Assembly: GCA_964057225.1 (NCBI GenBank)
Contig: OZ059897.1
Location: 13,082,001 to 13,146,000, forward strand
DNA: 64,000 nucleotides
Direction: 5' to 3'
From: Auanema rhodensis
Lineage: Eukaryota; Animalia; Nematoda
The notes under the pieces were generated by a model, which was not told the DNA's origin, did not search any database, and saw only the letters and a program-made list of their open reading frames with translations. Of the stretch, positions 8,516 through 63,031 are shown piece after piece. The translations under genes were made by a program, and so were the position numbers. Position 1 is the first letter of the stretch, and every line of letters begins with the position of its first letter.

Positions 8516-10583
8516 TTACTTAAGTTGAGGGAAGGCCATTTGTGGCTTAACCTCGGTAAGAGCCTCATTCCAGTATTGGGTGACGGTCTTCCATTGGGTG
8601 TAGAAGGCAACTCCGGCCTGAATTTTTTAAAAATATTATAAACACTGGTGGCAAGACTCAACCTTTCCATAGAAATTCATATCTCCACGGAACGATCCAC
8701 GAGATCCAGTGAAAGAGAACATAGGGAGAGGAACTGGGATGGGGACATTGACTCCGATTTGTCCACAGTCAACTTCAGCAGTGAATCTTAAATATATCAA
8801 TAAATATAAAATTAACTGAATAATTTTTACTTTCTAGCAGTAGCTCCATTGCTTGTGAAAATAGCGGTTCCATTTCCGTAGGGATTGCTGTTAATGATGT
8901 TCACAGCATCAGTAAGATTTTCGGCTTCCATGGCGACAAGAACGGGTCCGAAGATTTCTTCCTATAGTGAAAAACTTTTCAATTAGATTGAATTAAATTA
9001 CAAACCTTGTAGCAGGTCATGTTAGGGGTAACACCAGCGATGATAGATGGGCCAACAAAGTTTCCGTTCTCGAAACCAGGAACGACAAGATTGCTACCAT
9101 CAAGAAGAACATTAGCTCCTTCCTAAATAAAAAATACTAAAATTCTATCTGGAAATGGATGAAACCTTCTTAGCTCCCTGAACAAGAGCGTTAACACGGT
9201 TCATGGAGGCTTTGGAGATCAGTGGTCCAATATCGGTATCTTTCATCCATCCTTTAAAGAAAATTAGTGAGAAGGAAATAGAGGAAAGAAATCATACCAG
9301 CATTAACCTTGAGCTTCTTGACCTTTTCAACCAACTCTGGAAGCCATGAGCGGGCTTCTCCAACAAAGATAGCAGTGGTCAAAGCCATACAACGTTGACC
9401 GGCAGCTCCGAAGGCAGCGGCGGTGAGCTTAACATTCAACATGAATGAGAGAACAAATTGTGAAAATACCTGATTCAAAACTTGCTCCTTGTTGGCATCA
9501 GGCATAATAACTCCGTGATTCTTTGCTCCCATATTGGACTGGACACGTTTTCCATTCTTAGCTCCACGCTCATAAATGTGCTTTCCCTAAAAAATACTGA
9601 TAAGATTCAAAGCACAGCAAGAAAAACAACATACAGCGACGTCACCTCCAACAAAGGAGATAGCTTGGATATCGGGATGGTCACAGATGAAGTTAATTGA
9701 ATCGTGTTGTCCGTGGATAACGTTGACGCAACCATCAGGAACACCAGCTTCCTTAGCCAATTCAACAAGCATCATGGATGCTCCAGGATCTTGCTCAGAT
9801 GGCTTCAGGATCATTGTGTTTCCAGTAGCAAGAGCGATTGGGAACATCCAAAGGGGAACCATAGCTGGGAAGTTGAATGGACAAATACCAGCAGTGACTC
9901 CAAGAGGAACTCTCCAGGAGAAGGTATCCATATCGCGAGAAACGCTGAAATATATCATTTTGTAAGGGTATTTGAAATGAATACATACTTTGGAAGAGTT
10001 TCTCCCATCATCAGAGATGGAACAGAACAAGCGTGCTCTACAACTTGAAGACCACGGCTCACATCTCCTTCAGCATCGGGAAGAGTTTTTCCTTGTTCCT
10101 GTGTGATGTTTTCAGCGAGCTTCTTCATGTCACGTTTGATGAGAGCTTGTAAGCGAAGCATGGTCTGCTGACGAGTAAGAGGTGATCTGAACAAGATAAA
10201 GCTAGTTATTATTTTGACACCATCTATACTCACACATTCTTCCAGGTACTGTAAGCCTGCTTGCAAGAATCTACAGCAGCATTCATTTCAGCCTGGGTGG
10301 TCTTTGGGACACGAGAAATAACCTCGTTGGTAGCCTGAAATATAACACTTAGGAATAATTCATAAATATGAAACGTACGGGGTTGGTAAGCTCTACCCAT
10401 TCGTTGGTCTTAGACTCAACGGCTTGCCCATCAATCCAAAGCTTAACGGTATCCTGACTTCCCAAAACAGCACGGGAAGTAGAGAAAGCAGCGACTTGTT
10501 GTCCACATTGGACCTAATATACAGCATTTATTTTCTATAACAAAACTTAAACGTACTGGGAGCTTAGAAAGACGGGAGAGCAT
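8516..10583 (-). CDS. alh-8: Mitochondrial methylmalonate-semialdehyde dehydrogenase (ALDH6A1)
   Basis: Motifs include MLSRLSK.. (targeting peptide), [61 protein letters not shown] (catalytic Cys), EEIFGPV and C-terminal MAFPQLK*. A TTTTCAG acceptor lies at 10599-10605. Confidence 0.97.
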
Positions 10584-14343: not shown

Positions 14344-16886
14344 TTAAGGCAGGTTATCTTCAGTAACATCTTGCTCCTGTTTGATGCGACTACGGTCAAC
14401 TACATCAACTGGTGAATCTTCAACTGGCTGAAAAATATAACATGAAAAGGACATTGAAATAATACAAAACCTCGCAATGAACTACATCAACTCCAGGATT
14501 TGTATCATACAGTGCATTTTGACCTACAGCTTCACCATCTTCGCCTTTGTAAATCTGTAAGTACAATTTTGTAAAAACTAGTAAAAGAGAAAGTAAATAA
14601 ATAAACCTTGTTGTTGTACCCGTCATCTTCTTCTAATCTCATTTGATCTTGTGCAGCAGCATCACGACTGTATTGTATAGCCGATTGAGCTACACTTGTC
14701 ACCTAAATAAGCAGAATAAGAAAAAATATTAGCAAGGATTATATAGACATGAAAGGCATAAGGTCGAGGCAAAGTTAGGCCACAATTCGAGACACATACC
14801 GTGGCTTCAACATGCTGCATGCTAGCTGGAACGCGACGGGTTCGGTTATTCGCCGTCCGTGGAGGAGAATCAGGTGGTGGAGTCACCGGATGAACCTATA
14901 CAAACAGAGTCAGGCTTAAATTCGGGCGAAAGCGAACAAATCTTCATATATATGAAGGAAAAAGCAAAAAAAAAGGGCAAATCGGGCAAAATTTGAAATA
15001 AATACCTGTTGATATGGTTGAGGCTCGTCCTGATTAGAACCAGCTCGGCTTCTACGTCTTGCGTTCATAAAGAAATTTGCCACAGTAGATAAATCTAATC
15101 TCAAATGTTCAGCAATTGTCTGTTGCATTTCTCTTGAAGGACGTTGAGTCTCTTTGAAAATCGCCTTAATCGATGTTAACCTAATTATTTAACATTATAT
15201 ACATACTTGTAAAGTTCGTTTTTGTATGTCAGTGAAAACCAATCTAGGTCTCTTATTAGCTGGAGCATCACCATCTATGCTTCGTCTGTTAGCATGTCGT
15301 ACATTTTGAGCGGGAGTTGGAGGAGTCATTCCCATAGATTTGGATAAGCCATTTACAACATCCTCATTTTCTAAAAAGAAATCATAGTATAACAATATTG
15401 CAATGAAATATTACCATTTCCGTTTTTATACATGTCCAAAATTCCTAAACGCATTGATAATGGCTGTTGAACCCAGTTAAACATTCGGCGAAACGTTTCA
15501 CGTCCAGATTTTAATTTGTTCCAAGGCTTGGGATTCCTGAGCAAGTCAGACAAGGTGCCCTGACTCCTATAGACAATATTATAATTGAAATAAACTTAGT
15601 AATTTCGTTAAACCTGCATAAAATTCTTTCGGCGAATATGGCCTGAGGAATGGAATGTTGTTTGAGTTCATATGCTATACGTTTACACAATTCTTTCGTA
15701 TCAATGTATATATCGTCATCAATCTCAGCGTTTAAAGGATCGTTACTATCTTTTGTTGAATAAATTCTTCTTTCTGAAAGATTTTGAATAACATAAGCTT
15801 TCAAGAAATATATAATACGTTTGGGAGCATAAGCTTGTCTTTGGTAGGCAGCATCACGGTCATCTCCATTAAGCTGACTTCGCACTTCAGAATCTTCATC
15901 GTGTTTGATATTTCCTAATCGCGATGGAATCATAGATCCTGAAGGCGGACCTGAGTAACTATGAGGAGACGGTGATGAGTTCCGCTAAAGAATAAACATA
16001 ATATACAAAAAGCACAAGTAATTAGTTACCTGTTCACCAATTAAACTAGCAATCATCGTACTCGCTAATTCAACATTGCTAACTGCTGGCGGAGTTTCAG
16101 CTTGAGCTATCCTATCTAAATCTTGTTGTTGCATAGATAATTGAGATCCCATCATCATATGATGCGAGCCATCAAGAGTATCAGGCTCTTCCTGGAACAT
16201 TTACATATGGAGAATGTTTTAAAATTATGTTATGTTACCTTAATAAAAACTGAAGAGCGACTGAAATCACTACCAGCGTGAGTTCTCCGAGCATCCATAT
16301 GTAGGGGAGATAATAAACCGGCGGGTCCGTTGCCAAAACTGTATATATTTTGTTTAAGAATTCATAAAATAGTTAATTACCTTGTTTTATCAATACTCGA
16401 GTACTGACTTGGCAGTCCCATTAACCCAAAGCTACTACTAAACAAATAAACGGTTAATATAATTATAGAAAAAAAATGCCTTTGATCAGAAGCCATGCTC
16501 ATTGGAGCTAACGGTGCAAGTTGAGGACTAGAAGAGTGATCATTTATCATCACCGATGTAGCCGGAGCTGAGGATTGTTGAGGACTGATTTGTTCGAGGA
16601 AATTCTCTGGGAGATCATCGAAATTTCTTGAGTTATTAATGAATGTACTGGACGGGTCAATTTGAAGATAATCAGCCCTTCGTGGCTTTTCTCTATAAAA
16701 ACAACAATATACATTTAAACCGTAAAATACAAAGAAAAGAAGTTTGGATACGGTAACAAAAGGGGAGTGGCAACACAATTAGATGCGAAAATTCTATTGA
16801 GCTTAATCTATGAATTAGGAAACTAACCCGTTCGACGATCCCATCGATGTAACTGTGCTACAAGCTGTTACAGATGTGGGTTCCAT
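14344..16886 (-). CDS. ceh-38: ONECUT-class CUT + homeodomain transcription factor
   Basis: CUT domain DTKELCKRIAYELKQHSIPQAIFAERILCRSQGTLSDLLRNPKPWNKLKSGRETFRRM. Homeodomain KRPRLVFTDIQKRTLQAIFKETQRPSREMQQTIAEHLRLDLSTVANFFMNARRR carries the ONECUT F48/M50 signature. The ceh-38 assignment rests on recalled sequence and adjacency to malt-1. Confidence 0.9.
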
Positions 16887-43920: not shown

Positions 43921-46900
43921 ATGCCGTCCTCTGCACTTCTCACAATACCGGATGCCCATATGGGCCGGAAGCGGCGTGTATCAGATTTTCCGCATCGAAA
44001 GTGAGTTCCATACTTTCTTAATTTATATAATATTTACAATAAAATGCTTTATTTGAATTTATTATATAAGAATAATTTATTAAAAATATTTGATTTATCA
44101 TATATACATGTGTATAGGCATATATATAATATATATAATACATATAATATATATAATATATTATACGATGTTCTTGTATTTGGGTCAAACATTTGAAAAT
44201 AAATTTGTTAGGATTTTCATTTAAAAAAAAACAGAAAGTGCTTTGTGAATTGTCGTCAAAGTAGAAACAAAAAAATCCGCTAACGAAATTTCAACTTTAT
44301 AAAAAATTTATTCCTAAAACGGAAAAGACCATTATAAAAATGTTCATATATTACCAATTTTCTCCGCAATTTCTTTTACTGTTCGATTATTTGATGTCTT
44401 GTTTCTGAATTTTTGACATGTTCTAAGAAGATGAAAAAGAAAACTAGTTTTCAACATAATTGCCAAAATATTGAAAATTGTAAAAGAGGTTGGCGTACGT
44501 AGTATGTTAAGAGAGGGCTCTCTCTATACATATGTAGTATCTAGTATATATACATATACACATATTTGCAATTAGAACAGATTTTCGTCCAAATATTCAA
44601 AATATCAATTTGACACGAGTGCACTTTAGAAGCATAAAAACTTTTTTCCTCTTCTTCCTTCTAGTTCCTAGTCATTTAAAGATTTTTTTTATTGTTAGAA
44701 TGTTTTGAATAGGAAAAATGAACTGAAAATTGAGCATAGTATGCATATATTGTGCAAATATGTAGATATAAATAATACAAAAGGAAAATTGATACGACAT
44801 TCATAAACATAATTTTTTTTAAATTTTCTGATGTATAACCTTTAATATATTTTTGAGAAAATAAGATTGATTCAAAGAAAAAAATATATATGTTGTATAA
44901 TATAATATTAACTATATACAATATGAATAGTATGTATGTATGTATGTATACTTAATTAAAATTATTCTATTTCTATTTTAAATTTTTATGAAATTCAAAA
45001 TCTATCAAGATAACTATAATATTATGTATTTTTCAAACGTATCTATGACATACATATGTATATAGATAACATAAATACATATATTTCATATAGTACAATT
45101 CATTTCCTATTGTTTTTGCCTTCGTAACCCTTTCTTAAATGTAAAAAAATAAAAAGCTTCGTAGGAATAAGATAAGATGGCAGAAAGATAATCAGATGCT
45201 GTGACACTGATGAAATTATTTTACTGTTTGTCTATCTTTTCAATCTATTAGTCTAAATATTGTTTTTTTTTAATTTGTATTGTCTATATATCATGTTAAG
45301 AGATGATGCATACAATTACTGTTGTTTTGTACCTTAAGTTCACTAGTCTCTTATAAACTATAAGAGAAAACTTTTAAAAATAAAAATTAAATTGATTGTC
45401 AATAACAAAATGTGCAAATAGAAAAGCTCTTTACATTATTTGTTCTCTTTCGATCGTACTTTATCTAATTCAGCTTCTTAGCTTAGCTTTCTCATACTTC
45501 TCACATGTGTCTCATTTCTACTTTTATATATTTTCATTGTATTTTTAATGAAATTTAGCAATATACATGTATCTATACACGAATATATGTACATGTACCT
45601 TGTTTTGCCCTTTTATAATTTCTGTAAAAACTATAAATTTGCTATTTTCTCCTAAATTTCGTTCAAACAAATGAAATATATTGAACATATTGTTTTTGAT
45701 TTGATCAATTTTATATTCTTATAGTCTTCAATATATTAAAAATAATTGAAACTATTTATATATCTATATATTTACATAATGTTGATGAGATAGAAATTTG
45801 AAATATGTTTTGGATAATTTGAAAATATATCTGAAAACTTAAGTGAACGTATCGTCATGTATTGAAATTAGAATGATTATTTAGTTTTTTTTTCATTAAA
45901 TTCCACTATATAACAGCTATCAGTTATCTTCATTCAGAGAAAAAAAAAGTAAATCAGAAATAAAGATAAAGTGGAAGAAAGAAGTAATATTACGAAAGGG
46001 AATATCATCAAGTGAATTATATTTTTTTTTACTTTTCTCTGAATGAATATTATCTGTTTTTATATAAAGCAGCAGCAAAACGACATAAATGAACATGTTT
46101 TTTTATAATTTAAAGAAAAAAACAAATAATCTATCTCATGAGAATACCATATATATATGCATATATATATGTTTATATTTAAGATCAATTACTTTCTCAA
46201 TCTAAAAGATGCTGAATGACATTACAGACAGTGTGTGGTAGTCAACATAAAACTCATTAACTTATCATTTATTTTTTTACTCTAAATATTACTTAAAAGT
46301 TGACATTTTTCTTTTTTATTTGATTTAAAAAATAAAATTTATTACTTAATAACTGTGGACTTATATGTTAATCAATTTGTTTTTTTTATAATTATTTGAT
46401 TATAAATTTAAATAATTGTCTGTACTGTTATCATTATTTTGATAATTAAAGTTGCAACCAGCTGTGCTCATCTGCTACAAAAATAAACAAAAAGAAGATT
46501 TTTTTTTTGCTCATTTATAGATCATTTCTTCTTCATTTTAATATTTCTATCTCACATTAATACGTTTTGTCTTGGGTATTGAACCGAATATTAACTTCCG
46601 CTATTAACTTTTCTTTTCCGCCTGGTGAAGCATTAAGAAAATATATATTTCACTATATTATATAGTAGATATTCACATTAGTTGTAAGTAAGAAAGGATA
46701 AGACAATATAATAATAGAAGCAATGTCATCAGCTTATTTAGTTCAAATGTGTTAAGACGAGTATCATATAGAATATGAAATATGTAAAGTTTTTTTTTAC
46801 TTTAATGTATCGAATATATCATTCAAATTCTATTGTTCAATATTCTTTAAAATATTAATAATTCTTTGGAAAATTTATTAGCTTCTGCTAAATATTACCA

Positions 46901-52900: not shown

Positions 52901-55900
52901 TTCCTTGAAATCAGGTACATTGACCGGAATGATCCATGCTTATCCAACTCTCAAAAATGGAAAAGTGGACATGAAAGACATCATGAAAAGAGAGAGGAAA
53001 TGAGATTGAAAGATAAAAAAGACATGAGACTCATCTTGGAAAATGAGAAGAATAAGATAGATGGACAGAAGAGTCGTTGACAAACTCTGAAGACTGAGAA
53101 AGAAAAGCCGAAAAAGGGCAACAAGTTTCTCCTTGGCTTCACTCCGCCCGAATCTGCTCAGCTGTATCTTTAGTAACATCATCATCATCACAACCACCCA
53201 ATACTTCTTCGACGTTTCAAAGTATATTGTCTAGTATCAACAACGTTTCTCTCTATTTTGGCTATCCTATTTGGCTCAGTTTCATCTAGTCCTTCATTGT
53301 CATCTTCATTTTGTAATCAGTTGCTATACTTTTGCCGGATGGCAGCCGTCACGTTGACGAATTCGACATCACTAGCTGCAGCGTCCATACTTTCAAAGCC
53401 TATGACCCTTGCGGAAAAAGTAACACTAGTTGAAAAAGCTATTGATGATGCAAGCAGTACGAGCAGCAGGAGCAGCACTAGTCCACTTCGAGCCAATCAT
53501 ACTGATGAACCTTATCACCATCACGAACCTACTGAATCCCGTCGTAGCTCTGTCGCAACAACGGCTACTGTAATGACGGCAACGGCTTTAGACCAACAAG
53601 AATCTGTATATGTAATAGCTTCCATGACTACTAAGCCATACTCTGGAAGAATTAACCGAACAACGTCCACTCGCAACGCTACAACATGTCGTCGAGTTCG
53701 ATTCCATGATAGGCGCAGAGGCACTACAGGCCAAAGGTATTGAATTTCATGAAAATAGATTTCTTCTTTGATATTTGAAAGCTTTAATAGAAGTGTTGCT
53801 TCAGAGCATGCTCTCATTATTCTATTTCATTTTCTTTTCAAAAGCTATGCCAATATACATCAGATATATATCTTATATCTATCTCGTTTCGCAGTCTGCT
53901 CCTTCCACATATCTCTTGTTCTTTCTTGTTTTTTTAAGAAGAAAAAGAAACTATGATGAACAAAAAAAAAGATTTTTTGTGAATAGGGAAGTAAGAGTAA
54001 AATAAGAAATATTGAGATTGAGGAAGATAAACCGAGAAAAAACGAGATATGCGTATATGAAATGAAAATGTAAGAGAATTAAAGAAATAAAGAGATAGAG
54101 AGATAGAATATGAAAGAAGAGTAAGTGTTCATGACAACCGTTCTTCACGTATGACTTCATTGAGACTAATAGATATTGGACTTTTTTCACGTGTGTCACG
54201 TGTAACTTAACGTATTACGTATCCCATATTCATTTCATTAGCATCATACCCTTCTTACTTAGTAATAGTGAGACGCGGTGTCACAGATCTTCATGACCAA
54301 TGAGCTTTTAAACAGCCAAGGAAACCTTTACTAGTATAACCAAATGTTTAATTTCATTTTCATTTTATCTGTTAATCTTATTGATTTTTATCTTTTTGCA
54401 ATAATTTTTATAATGTTGATGTCGTTCATATTCTCATACTTTCACATCTTATTAAGTCTCACCTTTGAAGCCATGTGTGTATACGTATTTGAATAATTCA
54501 TTTGCTCTAAGTCTTCAGACAACAGTTTCCATGGACATTCATAGTTTAAGTTGGAAAAATTGTAAAAAGCTAATGAGACAGAAAAGCAGACAACAAGACC
54601 AGAAAGAATTGCATAGAAGGTATGACGAGTTAAATGGAAAAAAAATAGTTTCTGATCAGAGGAATGAGTCGAAGTTAAAGCCGACGAATAATTAAAAAGT
54701 TCAATGTGAACTATGACATCTCTTAGAAAATGAATTTGAATTTTGGTTATGAATATTATCTAAGTGCTTCTCTTCTTTCATTTTTTTTTCTTGTTACATC
54801 ATAGATATGAAGAACAAAATTAGTCTTTTGAGAGTAATCCATCCATAGTACATTGTTAATATTTAGTGAAAATTGAAAAGTTTTTTTTTATGATCATTAT
54901 GAAGAATTGAAGAGCTAATATTCGCACTCGCTGTTAAGATTTGACAAACTATTTTTTAAATTTTTCTTTTTGTCTTTCATGTCCAGTTCACTCATACCCT
55001 GTTTGAACTTTTATCTGTTTTCTGATTTTTACGCGCAGATACACACACTTTTACAGCTTTCCTATATCCGCACAACATAGTTCGAGAAAGCACATATTAT
55101 ACATAGACATACATAGATGTATTTTTCATTTTAACGAAGCAGAAAAAAAATGTTCTAAAAGGAAAAATGTTATGTTTATTAGAAATTCTCTTGCTCTCTT
55201 TTCTCTATTATACACCTCTTATGGCAAATAGTCAATCTATATGTTGCTTATAACTTTATAGCTATACCGATGGATTAATATAGTTCTTATACACATATTC
55301 CTTAATTATATATTAATAACTTCATTTAAAATTATTTCAGAACAGAACTTTTGATTAAGTAATTTTCTTGTTTTGTTCTTAAAATGATCAACGTGTAGTG
55401 GAGGGAAAGAGTTGAAAGTCTGAAAAAGCCTTTTACCAATAGTTGTTGTATCTGATAAACTATCAGATGGAAATCTTTTTTAATTTATATAATCTAATCA
55501 TAGATTAGAAAACTTTCATTTCTATCTAGTATTCGAATGAAACTTTGTCTTCATTTCGTCACCTGTTAAACGTGTGCGTGTAGGTTTCAGCCTTGTTTCA
55601 TGAGTATATTCATATAAAAATCCTTTTATATGCAATACACCCACAGAAAATCCTCTGTTTCACTCAAAACTGAAGTCAGTTGATGCTAATGCAGAAGAAG
55701 AGGAGAATGTAGAGAGATTTGAGAGAAAAAAAGAGAAAAAGGAGGAAAAAGAAAAGAGGAAGGAAGGTATCACTTGTGCCCACAAAGTAGACAAATCGTT
55801 TTTAAATCTATAAATACACCTGAATATCTTCATACTCATCCATCAGTAACAATGATTAAAAAGAGTTTTGAATTCAAATTATATCATATTACAAGTTTTT

Positions 55901-58900
55901 TTATCAAATTTCGAAGTTATTTTGTGTCTCTTTCATGTATTCATGAGCTTGATCTGTTTATTTATACTAATCATTAGTAACAAATACAGAATAAGTTTCT
56001 TTTTTTCTAAGTAACTATATATAACTAATTTAATTATAAATATAAATTATATACAAATAATGAATATATATATAGTATATAGTATATAATCTTTTATTCA
56101 AATTTGCTCGATGTTCAGTTTTAAAATTTCTTTGAGAAAAAAAAACCATTGGATTTTGCATAATAAATTGGGGGGAAGATTTTTTTTTTGTTTTCACTCA
56201 AAAACATTCTTTTTCCTACTCACGAAGAAAAAAGTGTTAAATCATCTTAGGATTCATAAAATTGCATGGAACATTTGGGTGGTACAAACTACTTTTTGCT
56301 TTTTCTTTTCAAAAAAAAAGAAAGAGAAAGATTATTTTGGAAAAATGTTACTCTATCTTCAAGATAATATTTTTAGAATGATCAATTTTGCAGCAAGTTT
56401 ATGTCAGTGAATATCAGAAATAAAAGACAAAAATCAAAGTTCGAGCTATTTATCTAAAAGAAAGATGTTTTTTTTTATTCATACTGCTGTTCACTTATAT
56501 TATTTTTTACAATCTATCTTCATCTTTAAAATTACTTTTGTTTATATTTCAAATATTATGCTTTTTTTTAATAATGAATTGTCTTATGAATACGTTTTGA
56601 GAATATCTTTTTTAGATCAAATGAGTTATAATATTTTTCATATTTCGATGTTTCTTACATCATATTCTGAAAATTAAACATAATATATGTAGACATGGTA
56701 TGGACATGTACATACATCTACATACATATGTATATAACTCTCTACTGTTATAATGAAATCAAACGATTTTATTTCAAAAATAATTATTAATATATATATA
56801 TATAATAAAATAATTCATAATTTTATATTGTTTTCATAATATTCATTACGACATATGTGAAGTTTTAGAAGAGCATTCATTCTTGCACTTTTCTTACTTT
56901 TTTAATTTGAAATTTCTAAATATACATATCTAATGGGAAATACAGTTACAACAAAGTTTTTTGTTTGAATATTAATTAAAATTCAATAATAATAATGTTC
57001 TCAACTAACTATTTTCAACTATTCTTCTGTTATTTTGATTTTTCCATTTCATTTGTATTAAATATAGTTTTATACTGTTACTGTTGCATAACTCCGGAAA
57101 GTGACTGCGACTTTAACCAAGCATTAATGTTTTAATTATATTCAGAAACTGAATAATATTTCTGAATATATTTTTTTAACTGGGAAAATGAAAATTTGCA
57201 TTTTTTTCAGCTTATTGTTCATTTGTGAACATGATTTCTGGGGGACTTCCAGCTAGCTTTGTCTCGCTCTCTCTTTCTCCCTCTGTGTGTATCTCTCTCA
57301 GAGTTTTATAGAGATCAACATTGACTTCCCTAGTTGCTTGTCATATAATTCATATTTTTCATTTGAAAAATAGAAAATCTAATTATAATTAATAACTTCT
57401 TCAATTTTGCAGGATGGTCTCCTCAACATCACTGGCTTGGACGTGCCTTTTAGTACAATTGGTTTTATCTTGTGTATGTTTAATAGCGTCATTGGCTATA
57501 ATAGCTGCGAAATTGCAATCTACATCAATACATCCAGAAAAGCAGCATATTAGGTTCGTAGTAGATTTTAAGTTTTGTCGTTTTGTTTATTTCTTTGTTT
57601 TGGCTTAATTTGAAAAAAAAAGATATTTCTTTTCATAAGAATTATAAGAAGAAATGAAGACTTGACATAATGAGATGACGACTTTTGATATTTTGAAAAA
57701 AAAATTTTAAATAAAAAACAAATTTATTATATATATATATATAATAAATTTTTTGAAGTTTTATAATATATGTATATATATTATAAAACTTAATTTAATA
57801 AATGCCGTATGTTATGGTACATTTATGAAACTTCTATGGGTATAAACCAATAAATAGCTTCGTTTAGTAAGCTCTTAAAAGAAAGAAAAATATTTTCTTT
57901 TAAGTTTCTATTCAATTCTTTAACATTTTTCTTTTTGAATCCTAATGGAAAAAGTTCTAAAGTAGATGTAAACAAGAATAAAGTTTCTTTCGAATAAAAG
58001 CAAACCAGACTGATCTTATAAATGAGTGTCGAATGGCGTGAAAACAGGAAGTAAAGTATGGTTTACGTGAGAATATTGAAGCAAAAGTCATTTTATAAAA
58101 AAAATTTGAATAAAGCGGTCCATTCTCATAATTCTATATAAATAATCTTTTTCTTTTCAGCATCGAATGGTGGTCCTTTTGTGTTATGAGCTTTTTAATG
58201 ATATGGGCTACAATCTTTTCAATGTTAGGATTATCAGGACATAAAAAAATGTTAATTCTGCCTCATATATTATTATTGGTAAGTTTAAAATTATTTTTTG
58301 GATAACAAAATAAGAAATTAAACTATAATATTATTATTATTATTATTTTGATTTCATAGAACTGAATATATACAATAAACTTACATACATACATCGTATG
58401 TATTATTAGATATGTTAAATATAGATATTTATATATTATTTACATATTAATGAATGTTATAATTTGTTTACTATGCAGTACTATTACGTACATATGTGTA
58501 TATCCGTATCTAAAGTCCATCCTAAACCGGACCAGTAGTGTCAGAGCTGTCGCCATGGGTGATAATCTCTAAATTGCCTCAATGGTTCGATGGCTGAATC
58601 ACACCTACACATGAACTACTAACCTTTCACATTACATTTGAATTCTAAATATATTTTTTGTTAATTTTTCTTAAAATTTAAAGCAACATTTGACAATTAT
58701 CTACAGTTTTTTTGTATTTCAGCTTGTATACAGCTTATTCGTTGGACGTGTACTTCTTTTAGTTTTATTAGAGTTTGAGTTAACTGAACTCAATTGGCTA
58801 ATTGGAGTTTGTGTCTTAACAACAGCCGGTAATATCATTTAATCAAATAATATCCTTCATAACAACAACATTTAGAAATATTTCTAACGTGCTCAATTGT

Positions 58901-58934
58901 TTTTGAATTTCGAACGGTTACGTCTATGACCTAG
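43921..58934 (+). CDS. Small four-TM membrane protein, cluster gene 1 (unknown function), isoform with distal first exon
   Basis: First exon 43921-44000 (MPSSALLTIPDAHMGRKRRVSDFPHRK, GTGAGT donor, phase 2) is phase-compatible with core exons 57413-57553, 58161-58278, 58723-58828 and 58876-58934, which encode four hydrophobic helices. The core is well supported; the 13-kb join is inferred. Confidence 0.72.
53339..53736 (+). CDS. Alternative first coding exon of four-TM gene 1 (Ser/Thr-rich, ~132 aa)
   Basis: GC-richer open frame MAAVTLTNS..CRRVRFHDRRRGTTGQR ending AG|gtattg (phase 2), compatible with exon 57413. It is preceded by GA-rich promoter-like DNA at ~52330-53150. Confidence 0.7.
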
Positions 58935-58956
58935 AGTATATTAGAAATAAAATATA

Positions 58957-59695
58957 ATGGCAATGGATTATCAGGTTAGTTAGAATAAAGAATATATAAA
59001 TTATTTTATTTTTTATATATTAAATCATTATTTAGGTTGTTCTTGCTGGTGAAATGGTACTTCTAATTACGGGTATTACGGCTATTGGTATGTTGCATGG
59101 TTGGACAGAAGGTGTCGGCTATCATATGAGGGAATACTATACTCCTTTGTACGTTTATATAATTTTTTTTTGAAATTGGTAATATTATCTATTTCAGATG
59201 GGCATGTGCTGTATTAATGTGTGCTCTTTTACTATTAATTATATCATTAGCAATGGTTTTCATCTTTCTTCACTTTAATTGTCCTGGAATTATTAAACAA
59301 CATATCTTCGCATTGGTATTAATTTATAATTTATATATTGAATTTGGATATAATTAAGTCACACAAATACAATAATTTTTACTCTTAAAAAAGCTTTCAT
59401 ATATCAAACGATCAATATATCTTATACCATATAGGGAAAATTCTTAACTATTAGGCTTAAATCAGCATATAAATCATATAGTATATGAATATATAAATCT
59501 AATTAAGATATTCATGATTTTCAGGCTGTTTCGTGGCCGTTATCGTTATGCATCACAGTATCAGCAGTAGTTGCTGGAGCTCCAATACTTGTCGGAATTG
59601 TCTTAATTCTATTTTTCTCATCATTACTTCCATTTGCGTATATATATAGTCATGCTGAATGGACTACAGCAACTGAAGATTCACCCGTAATATAA
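58957..59695 (+). CDS. Small four-TM membrane protein, cluster gene 2 (~139 aa)
   Basis: Exons 58957-58974, 59036-59148, 59198-59315 and 59525-59695 are in frame: MAMDYQ-VVLAGEMVLLITG..-WACAVLMCALLLLIISLAMV..KQHIFAL-AVSWPLSLC..EDSPVI*. An extra intron from 59687 could give a slightly longer C-terminus. Confidence 0.8.
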
Positions 59696-59924
59696 ACAAT
59701 TTACAAATAAACAGTTCTCACCTTCCTCACTAGAATCCTCATCTAGCTTCCTCTCGCTTCACTCCTCCTCTCTTTCTTTTTCCTCCTGATTCCTAGTTTG
59801 TGAGCTAGAAGTTCTGATTAGTAAGTACTCCTTTACTTGTTATTTTGTTATATTCTTCCTTATTTCCTTAGTATAAACGAAAACAATAAGATTATCTTCC
59901 ATTCTTGTGAGCTGTGCAGTGATT

Positions 59925-60488
59925 ATGTTACGAACGATGACATTCAATTCTGAAGATCCAAACATCTATCTTCCTATTAAAATTCCTCTTCTCATCATTA
60001 CTATCTTTCAACTAACTTTTACTGTCATCTTTATTGTTGAAATTTCACTAACATTAACAAGAGATGATCAGTACTTTGTGAATAGCACAACAAGGTAAGC
60101 CTATTCAAATCTCTATCCTTCCCCTATGGATAATATCTTAATTTAGAATATTCTCTATCATATACTTAACTATCAATATACTTTGGGCTTTAAGCCTCGG
60201 ATGTGTTGTATACGTGATGATAACTAATCGATATTCTTTCTTAATCCCCCATTTAGTATATACGGTAATACATGAATTCTTTATAATTTCATTGAAGAGT
60301 TCTTCTTATTTCAGTCTATTTTGGAAATGTTTTATTTTTTATCTACAGCACTACTTTTCTTTGATGATACCGAACCATTATCATTAATATTTATCATATC
60401 TTTAACTATATTTCTGGCAATTTGTATCTATCATGAAATCAAATGTTATAGGAAAATGCGAATGTATGTTTGCAATGATGTGTTATAA
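59925..60488 (+). CDS. Small four-TM membrane protein, cluster gene 3 (~153 aa)
   Basis: Exons 59925-60094, 60147-60264 and 60315-60488 are in frame: MLRTMTFNSEDP..IFQLTF..-IFSIIYL..RYSFLIPHLVYT-SILEMF..IFLAICIYHEIKCYRKMRMYVCNDVL*. Confidence 0.8.
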
Positions 60489-60850
60489 TTTATAAAACGA
60501 AAAATCCCTTGATATTGATATGCTGAATATCTATTCTTACCAACCTTGTCACATGCTGTTTTTTTGTTTAATTATTGTCATGTTTGAACTTATCACTTTC
60601 TCCAGGTCACTTATTTTATAAATTAATAAAAATTATGTGAATTAATCGTTATTGAAACTTAATACAAATATATGAAAACATTATTAATGAAAACTTTAAA
60701 ATATGAAATATAAATAAAATTATTTATAATTAATTAAGAAATACATTAATCTTATCTAATTATAGTATGTTTTCATAATACAAGAATTAAATAAGAATAT
60801 TTTATAAAAATATTCTTGTTATAGCTAACTATTCGCATATTATATACAAA

Positions 60851-63031
<2,181 letters not shown>

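Follow-up and report, generated by a model that had tools for sequence, protein, structure and literature searches.

Do three small, highly diverged membrane-protein genes that lie side by side descend from one ancestor, and are their products made together? The question is raised by a stretch of Auanema rhodensis DNA of 64,000 nucleotides (nt) (contig OZ059897.1), hereafter the window, in whose positions all coordinates are given. It carries three consecutive genes, g1, g2 and g3, on the + strand at 57413-60488 (Table 1). On balance we lean towards an ancient paralogous triplet of small four-transmembrane (TM) proteins, conserved among nematodes and expressed as one transcription unit. The initial annotation had described three + strand genes of ~140-153 amino acids (aa) with four helices each, and our models agree, encoding 140, 139 and 153 aa with four TM segments predicted by hydropathy in every protein. 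The window is AT-rich (GC 29.7 %), and its introns are of nematode style, being short and bounded by GT..AG with TTTCAG-type acceptors.

The gene models were compared with RNA from four runs (X1-X4) of one study, in the form of assembled contigs, which drop rare variants and in which a span over several genes is not proof of one RNA molecule. A contig of ~1.87 kb aligned with zero mismatches to 57413-57551, 58159-58277, 58722-58827, 58875-58972, 59034-59148, 59198-59314 and 59524-60602. All six introns of g1 and g2 (57554-58160, 58279-58722, 58829-58875, 58975-59035, 59149-59197 and 59316-59524) were confirmed by RNA with GT..AG borders, and RNA joints likewise confirmed a 118-nt exon in each of the two genes. 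The exon at 58876-58974 is shared between the genes: it holds the g1 stop codon (TAG, 58932-58934), a 22-nt ATG-free spacer with AATAAA at 58946, and the first 18 nt of g2 from its ATG at 58957. A g1 model ending at TAA 58842 was replaced by one with a fourth exon on the evidence of the RNA joint 58827/58875. We also discarded a single g1+g2 gene with an internal repeat, because TAG 58932, which lies within the spliced exon, ends the g1 frame, and g2 is read in a frame of its own; joining the two by read-through or exon skipping encountered further stops.

Upstream, the contigs led to two alternative first coding exons of g1, lying 13.4 kb (exon A) and 2.8 kb (exon B) away. Exon A was placed by the loose 5′ end of the X1 and X2 contigs, which joins 57413 and has an exact unique match at 43971-44000; exon B was placed by the loose 5′ end of the X3 and X4 contigs, with an exact unique match at 54588-54617. 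Both are spliced to the acceptor 57412/57413, in frame with ATG 57414. Downstream, RNA was continuous across g3 (59524-60602; in X4, 59872-60551), with a depth in X4 of 9.6 over g3, comparable to 16 over the g1-g2 contig. A joint removing a 51-nt intron in the g2-g3 spacer (59820/59872, intron 59821-59871) was present in run X4 only. The two g3 introns (60095-60146 and 60265-60314) were unspliced in every contig of the four runs, whereas the six g1 and g2 introns were removed, and the unspliced g3 form encodes only a 57-aa product. RNA junctions thus matched the annotated exons throughout g1 and g2, but not in g3, whose retained introns could reflect regulation or a silent gene. Other RNA contigs matched only 58072-58114 and 58608-58669 within g1 introns before running into unrelated sequence; these two segments resemble copies of a repeat that is both dispersed and transcribed.

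We found that the triplet extends well beyond A. rhodensis. A search with the last exon of g2, and then with the Panagrolaimus protein, yielded g2 orthologues in at least 15 nematode genera. The Panagrolaimus query retrieved them from Panagrellus, Halicephalobus, Ditylenchus, Acrobeloides, Aphelenchoides, Bursaphelenchus and Heterorhabditis, and also from Haemonchus, Necator, Ancylostoma, Cooperia, Mesorhabditis and Strongyloides, where the entries are called 'uncharacterized', 'MARVEL domain-containing' or 'conserved plasma membrane protein', among other names. The g2 search did not retrieve the g2 of the window itself, which fits the earlier remark that this gene is missing from the track of open reading frames (ORFs). 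A small gene precedes g2 in all six other species considered and follows it in five of the six, as annotated or by spliced alignment. The order g1-g2-g3 was found in Haemonchus contortus, Ancylostoma ceylanicum, Bursaphelenchus xylophilus, Halicephalobus and Aphelenchoides bicaudatus, that is, in nematode clades IV and V. This shows that the triplication predates the clade IV/clade V split and that the order has been kept since, in line with the earlier proposal of an old duplication that stayed physically linked.

Orthologue models were built with a purpose-written protein-to-genome aligner, validated on g1 of the window. In H. contortus the exons measure 140/118/106/59 nt in g1, exactly as in the window, 12/113/118/165 nt in g2 and 158/118/162 nt in g3. 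The corresponding values are 140/118/106/62, 12/113/118/165 and 155/118/162 nt in A. ceylanicum, and 140/118/177, 128/118/177 and 179/118/165 nt in B. xylophilus. The B. xylophilus structures were proved by aligning transcript contigs to the genome and were identical in six RNA contigs from six runs, all spliced and spanning the ORFs. Exon sizes were altered in Halicephalobus and Aphelenchoides. Of the features that the initial annotation proposed to look for in other genomes, the gene order was recovered in five species and the 118-nt exon in all three genes of three. In one B. xylophilus RNA contig the first 29 nt (L013 1-29), which join inside the first coding exon of g1, had no match upstream of the gene; they may stem from an alternative 5′ exon or from the assembly itself.

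Compared by local scripts, the spliced window proteins shared 55-74 % identity with their orthologues for g2, 29-59 % for g1 and 21-30 % for g3. Between H. contortus and A. ceylanicum the ratio of nonsynonymous to synonymous divergence (dN/dS) was 0.075 for g1 and 0.10 for g3, while g2 gave a dN of 0.12 with saturated dS. These low values indicate that all three are real coding genes. Within the triplet, g2 is both the most conserved member and the most divergent branch, and g3 is the fastest-evolving member. A 17-nt stretch in the last exon of g1 (58900-58916), ending 15 nt before the stop, is identical to A. ceylanicum (L008, just 5′ of 9917), where overall protein identity is only ~56 %; conservation of an RNA element could account for it, or plain codon constraint on F-E-F-R-T.

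The surroundings of the triplet were also compared. In clade IV (L001, L005 and L006) a gene for an ERMP1-type M28 peptidase lies downstream on the opposite strand, separated from the triplet in B. xylophilus and A. bicaudatus by a small unannotated gene; these two species also carry a JmjC gene and a Chromadorea_ALT gene upstream. The neighbours in the window differ from those in clade IV, so that across clades only the triplet itself is syntenic.

We then considered how three such ORFs might be expressed, starting from their spacing. Between the g1 stop and the g2 ATG lie 22 ATG-free nt in the window, 0 nt in H. contortus (TGAATG) and A. ceylanicum (TAAATG), 97 nt in B. xylophilus, ~130 nt in A. 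bicaudatus and ~170 nt in Halicephalobus. Between g2 and g3 the distance is 20 nt in H. contortus, 23 nt in both A. ceylanicum and A. bicaudatus, 60 nt in Halicephalobus and 229 ATG-free nt in the window, while in B. xylophilus the two ORFs overlap by 43 nt. A GC-rich environmental contig of 680 nt from a metagenome (L009) holds, at 222-679, the 118-nt (39-codon) exon of a g2 gene, its last exon and then a g3-like ORF. The latter lacks the first intron and begins within the g2 ORF, its ATG giving an overlap of 34 nt that independently repeats the one in B. xylophilus.

In SL2-type operons of C. elegans, an intercistronic region of ~100 nt separates the upstream poly(A) site from the downstream trans-splice site; in SL1-type operons the two sites are adjacent. 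Gaps of 0-23 nt, or an overlap, leave no room for a full 3′ untranslated region (UTR) plus such an SL2 intercistronic region. SL2-type spacing fits only g1-g2 of B. xylophilus, A. bicaudatus and Halicephalobus (97 to ~170 nt) and g2-g3 of the window (229 nt). The locus otherwise resembles nematode operons in having all cistrons on one strand, a single upstream promoter region, an order kept across species and RNA over all cistrons. It departs from them in several ways. With start codons that directly follow the preceding stop, come 20-23 nt after it or precede it in an overlap, processing into two separate mRNAs would leave at least one of them incomplete. One cistron boundary is enclosed by a cis-spliced exon, and the g2-g3 spacer has a cis-intron. 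Finally, the cistrons are paralogues. This leaves two possibilities, namely a non-standard processing that yields mutually exclusive or overlapping mRNAs, or polycistronic translation, for example by re-initiation.

The alternative that best withstands these data is an ordinary compact operon, from which three mRNAs would be released by 3′-end formation and spliced-leader trans-splicing, with independent proteins linked only because the downstream genes have no promoters. We consider this possible, if on the doubtful side. Close spacing on one strand is what it would predict, and the conserved order could be explained by operon linkage alone. In B. xylophilus the 97-nt g1-g2 spacer closes with a U-rich tract and an AG right before the ATG; in the window an AATAAA stands 11 nt after the g2 stop, and between it and the g3 ATG come a pyrimidine-rich stretch and candidate acceptors. 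Moreover, a 22-nt spliced-leader branch would probably be trimmed in assembly, so that its absence from the contigs would be uninformative. However, the 0-nt junctions of the two strongylids, the 20-23-nt gaps at three g2-g3 junctions, the 22-nt gap between g1 and g2 of the window and the 34-43-nt overlaps in B. xylophilus and L009 provide no space for a 3′ UTR and a ~100-nt intercistronic region. RNA that looks mature also carries the end of g1 and the start of g2 in a single exon with a splice joint on either side, and a shared function is more probable for paralogues than for arbitrary operon partners.

A second alternative, which we hold to be unlikely, is that g3 is silent or decaying in A. 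rhodensis; the region past g2 would then act chiefly as an extended 3′ UTR, leaving g1 and g2 as the only functional genes. The retention of both g3 introns in four of four runs and the 57-aa limit on the retained form speak for it, as do the rapid divergence of g3 relative to g2 and the apparent lack of a nearby g3 in Mesorhabditis belari; the depth in X4 (9.6 against 16) points the same way. Nevertheless, the 153-codon ORF is intact over three exons in DNA of 30 % GC, where stops are frequent. Both introns are canonical GT..AG introns at ancestral positions, the 118-nt length is kept, and the QL motif in TM1, N-R-x-x-F-L-I-P-H and E-x-x-C-Y-R-x-M are preserved. In addition, purifying selection acts on g3 in strongylids (dN/dS 0.10), B. 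xylophilus does splice it, and the retention data come from one study with four similar samples whose contigs lose rare variants.

The triplet expressed as one unit, which we prefer to both alternatives, would work as follows. RNA that begins at far-upstream promoters (first exons 13.4 or 2.8 kb away) runs through all three ORFs, and the tight spacing of these ORFs (0-23 nt, or overlap) would link their expression, through either non-standard operon processing or re-initiation on a polycistronic mRNA. The three products would then be made together and could jointly serve, in cis, as the subunits or scaffolds of a single membrane complex, whose likeliest site would be a cell junction or an endo-lysosomal membrane. 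Co-transcription of g1-g2-g3 is likely. The co-expression suggested in the initial annotation is made plausible by spliced RNA contigs across the ORFs in two species, but a contig across genes is no proof of one molecule. A stronger version, to which we give little credence, is a true eukaryotic polycistronic mRNA in which ORF2 and ORF3 are translated by termination-reinitiation, so that three paralogous subunits of a tetraspan complex would be supplied in fixed proportions by an arrangement predating the clade IV/V split. The features behind it are TGAATG, TAAATG, the 20-23-nt ATG-free gaps and the short overlaps.

The kinship of the three genes is seen best in their exon structure. The coding length before the 118-nt exon is 140 nt in g1, 131 nt in g2 and 170 nt in g3, each leaving two bases over, and the exon itself ends on a codon boundary; the arrangement is thus phase 2/118 nt/phase 0 in all three genes. 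The initial annotation had put these exons at 58161-58278, 59198-59315 and 60147-60264, with flanking phase-2 and phase-0 introns, and this proved exact. It was equally correct that a histidine occupies the 35th full codon of each exon (LILPH in g1, IIKQH in g2, FLIPH in g3), a residue that alignments showed to be near-invariant in all three families. The phase 2/phase 0 exon of 118 nt recurs in all three genes of B. xylophilus, where it is RNA-proved, and of H. contortus and A. ceylanicum; M. belari keeps it in g1 and g2, so that these two genes have it in four other species.

Direct pairwise similarity between the window proteins was weak (z 2.85 for g1-g3, 1.45 for g1-g2 and -0.15 for g2-g3). 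Alignment of family profiles with hhalign gave a different picture for g1 and g3, with a probability of 95.6 %, an E value of 1.3e-8 and 120 collinear columns, at a score of 55 vs 11-15 for reversed-sequence controls (P 0.19-0.52). This alignment takes in the QL in TM1 already pointed out for g1 and g3, an N/K-x-x-x-L-L-P-H loop and the E-x-x-C-Y-R-x-M end. By profile, g1 and g3 are clear homologues. The profile similarity proposed for the whole set therefore stood for this pair, but was only marginal for g2. We next used the exon boundaries to fix the register beforehand (39 codons, ungapped) and scored it profile against profile. For every pair the register set by the exons came first among ~190-200 offsets (z 4.95, 6.58 and 4.14) and beat column shuffles (p <= 0.001). 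From identical exon length and phases in four species, the near-invariant histidine, the register score and the shared topology, we accept a common ancestry of g1, g2 and g3; g2 is tied to the other two by exon structure, the in-register motif and its language-model neighbours.

That the genes are instead unrelated small hydrophobic proteins whose equal exon length and histidine are coincidental is scarcely credible: the low direct z scores, and the inflation of similarity scores by hydrophobic composition, would allow it, but three further species have the identically phased 118-nt exon in each gene of the triplet, the exon-defined register tops the offsets for every pair around a near-invariant histidine, and for g1 and g3 the profile E value against reversed controls already contradicts it.

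As to the family, the initial annotation had seen a resemblance to LAPTM/DUF4728-type tetraspans. The nine exon pieces of the window gave only sub-threshold Pfam matches, with none for the g1 pieces; among them was a weak match of g3 exon 2 to DUF7027 (PF22954; E 0.021, 15.2 bits, against a gathering cut-off of 27 bits). The orthologues were more telling. B. xylophilus g1 matched DUF7027 just below the cut-off (24.7 bits, E 2.3e-5) and DUF4728 weakly (E 0.045). B. okinawaensis g1 (P0033) has a precomputed PF22954 match and is named 'DUF7027 domain-containing' in UniProt, and weak precomputed DUF7027 matches exist for g1 of Halicephalobus, M. belari and A. ceylanicum. B. xylophilus g3 gave no DUF7027 match, an NCBIfam search gave no match, and neither did a homology search by word index that used the stop-free stretch spanning g3 exon 1 and whose length window excluded full-length proteins. 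The nearest named ESM-Atlas clusters were the same for g1, g2 and g3, namely a nematode cluster, arthropod DUF7027/DUF4728 and then TMEM217 and LAPTM4A; such language-model neighbours are a lead rather than a test. On these profile matches the g1 family is provisionally assigned to Pfam DUF7027, close to DUF4728 and more loosely to LAPTM. The earlier LAPTM/DUF4728 lead was thus a good one for g1 (DUF7027, weakly DUF4728) and g3; g2 and g3 themselves match no Pfam family.

DUF7027 and DUF4728 (PF15860) include the Drosophila pasiflora proteins. Pasiflora1 and Pasiflora2 are core septate-junction components, the hallmarks of the family are four TM helices and, in all nine fly members, a PW where TM3 begins, several diverged paralogues act non-redundantly, and the family account names no nematode members (PMC4582180, Deligiannaki et al. 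2015). CG15098/ikebana carries DUF4728 and has been placed in the tetraspan 'pasiflora' family, with LAPTM4 put in the same broad family (10.1101/2024.04.13.589362), and DUF4728 was described as specific to arthropods (10.1101/112664). The nematode proteins resemble Pasiflora1/2, Fire exit and CG15098/ikebana in size (~140-170 aa), in having four TM segments and in a conserved proline-containing motif at the start of TM3, where the position of the motif is kept, as is the proline in g1 and g3. In contrast to the nematode genes, the fly genes are not described as a co-transcribed triplet (PMC4582180). By the motifs that define the family, g1, g2 and g3 would be relatives of the pasiflora family rather than members, and the triplet may represent a nematode branch of the DUF7027/DUF4728 tetraspans, which include the pasiflora proteins and, more loosely, LAPTM.

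Other four-TM families fitted less well. LAPTM4A/4B/5 (Mtp, PF03821) are similar in size and topology, and LAPTM4A clusters occur among the more distant language-model neighbours (scores 0.83-0.86), but no exon piece or orthologue matched Mtp at E <= 5, and the C-terminal PY motifs (PPxY, LPxY) were not seen in alignments of the nematode tails. The MARVEL domain (PF01284) also has four TM segments, and automatic UniProt names label several g2 orthologues 'MARVEL domain-containing protein'; none of 19 g2 members matched the MARVEL Pfam hidden Markov model at E <= 5, and these names probably come from another profile. Synaptogyrin appeared only as a non-significant Foldseek row. Literature searches on DUF7027, nematode pasiflora homologues and re-initiation in nematode operons found no relevant work.

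Several observations weigh against an ancient, jointly expressed triplet of pasiflora-like proteins. A single g2 search found no orthologue in Caenorhabditis, and M. belari has g1-g2 with no recognisable g3 within 5 kb (L007 8645-13641). Contigs spanning several ORFs do not prove a single RNA molecule, and with its introns retained in all four window runs the g3 protein may not be made there. In hhalign, g2 stood only marginally above the null (P 0.004 to g1 and 0.055 to g3; controls 0.17-0.52), although both marginal alignments land exactly on the 118-nt exon. None of 19 members of the g2 family matched any Pfam family, including DUF7027 and DUF4728 at E <= 5. Structural comparison gave little information: AlphaFold models of g2 and g1 orthologues are four-helix TM bundles (pLDDT 87.3 and 89.6), and Foldseek against PDB and an ESM Atlas shape search with these models brought up nothing beyond generic helix bundles, for example MFS transporters and designed bundles. 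When PDB sequences were searched with the family profiles, no meaningful match emerged. Finally, the pasiflora PW is absent, g1 and g3 having PH and g2 K/H-Q/H-H with no tryptophan there. The VxSQYQ that Pasiflora1 orthologues carry after TM4 (VxSQYQ or VxS at the TM4/C-terminal boundary; PMC4582180) is missing as well; g1 of clade IV and g3 end in E-x-x-C-Y-R-x-M, and g2 instead has P-F-A-Y-I-Y-x-x-A-E-W at this boundary.

We rate the locus as an unstudied nematode branch of DUF7027/pasiflora-like tetraspans in a conserved, unusually tight three-cistron unit. If this is true, a nematode branch would be added to domains of which DUF4728 was earlier called arthropod-specific, and a route would open to ask whether nematode apical junctions employ pasiflora-like proteins. 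Two Pfam-orphan families, g2 and g3, prove to be old paralogues of a DUF family, with an argument from exon structure recovering kinship where sequence searches fail. Standard nematode operon processing does not predict ORFs that abut or overlap, as these do across distant species while purifying selection acts on them, and the locus is thus a compact natural test case for the expression of downstream cistrons in animals. In addition, g2 appears to be missing from the A. rhodensis protein set.

Table 1. Genes and exons of the triplet in the window.
Feature	Position	Strand	Description
g1	57414-57553, 58161-58278, 58723-58828, 58876-58934	+	140 aa
g2	58957-58974, 59036-59148, 59198-59315, 59525-59695	+	139 aa
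g3	59925-60094, 60147-60264, 60315-60488	+	153 aa
g1 alternative first coding exon A	43921-44000	+	ATG 43921 in frame; 27-aa basic N-terminal extension; donor GT 44001
g1 alternative first coding exon B	54531-54619	+	ATG 54531 in frame; 30-aa basic N-terminal extension; donor GT 54620
g1 common exon	57413-57553	+	ATG at 57414; TM1; 140 coding nt, phase-2 end; RNA joint 57551/58159, GT..AG; 72 % identity to H. contortus g1 exon 1
g1 118-nt exon	58161-58278	+	TM2, short basic loop, LILPH opening TM3; RNA joints on both sides
g1 exon 3	58723-58828	+	106 nt, a length also found in H. contortus and A. ceylanicum; TM3, loop, start of TM4; RNA joints 58277/58722 and 58827/58875
Shared g1/g2 exon	58876-58974	+	g1 C-terminus, spacer and g2 start mini-exon; contiguous in RNA, spliced on both sides
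g2 exon 2	59036-59148	+	113 nt; TM1 and first loop; phase-2 end; RNA joints; 85 % identity to H. contortus
g2 118-nt exon	59198-59315	+	TM2, loop HFNCPGIIKQH, start of TM3; RNA joints 59148/59198 and 59314/59524
g2 last exon	59525-59695	+	TM3-TM4 and tail; stop TAA 59693-59695; AATAAA at 59706
g2-g3 spacer	59696-59924	+	229 nt, pyrimidine-rich, ATG-free; encloses 51-nt GT..AG intron 59821-59871
g3 exon 1	59925-60094	+	170 nt; N-terminus, TM1 with QL motif; phase-2 end; from ORF and splice sites; transcribed; orthologues in H. contortus, A. ceylanicum and B. xylophilus
g3 118-nt exon	60147-60264	+	TM2, loop TNRYSFLIPH, start of TM3; from ORF and splice sites
g3 last exon	60315-60488	+	TM3-TM4, E-x-K-C-Y-R-K-M tail (C-terminal motif common to clade IV g1 and g3 orthologues); stop TAA 60486-60488; RNA continues to ~60602

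Other features of the window lie near or apart from the triplet. On the - strand, 60767-61033 carries the C-terminal exon of a cytochrome P450 (CYP4-like, from the translation of the ORF at 60851-61033) converging on the 3′ end of g3, with separate RNA contigs over 60767-61000. The long first intron of g1 contains, ~0.8 kb upstream of exon B, a + strand ORF of 161 aa (53258-53743) that is rich in serine and threonine, has a locally raised GC content of 39 % and may be a separate gene or additional 5′ exons. Farther away on the - strand, ORF pieces at 9254-10266 look by translation like an aldehyde dehydrogenase of the methylmalonate-semialdehyde type, and an ORF at 15511-15933 carries, likewise by translation, what looks like a CUT DNA-binding domain.

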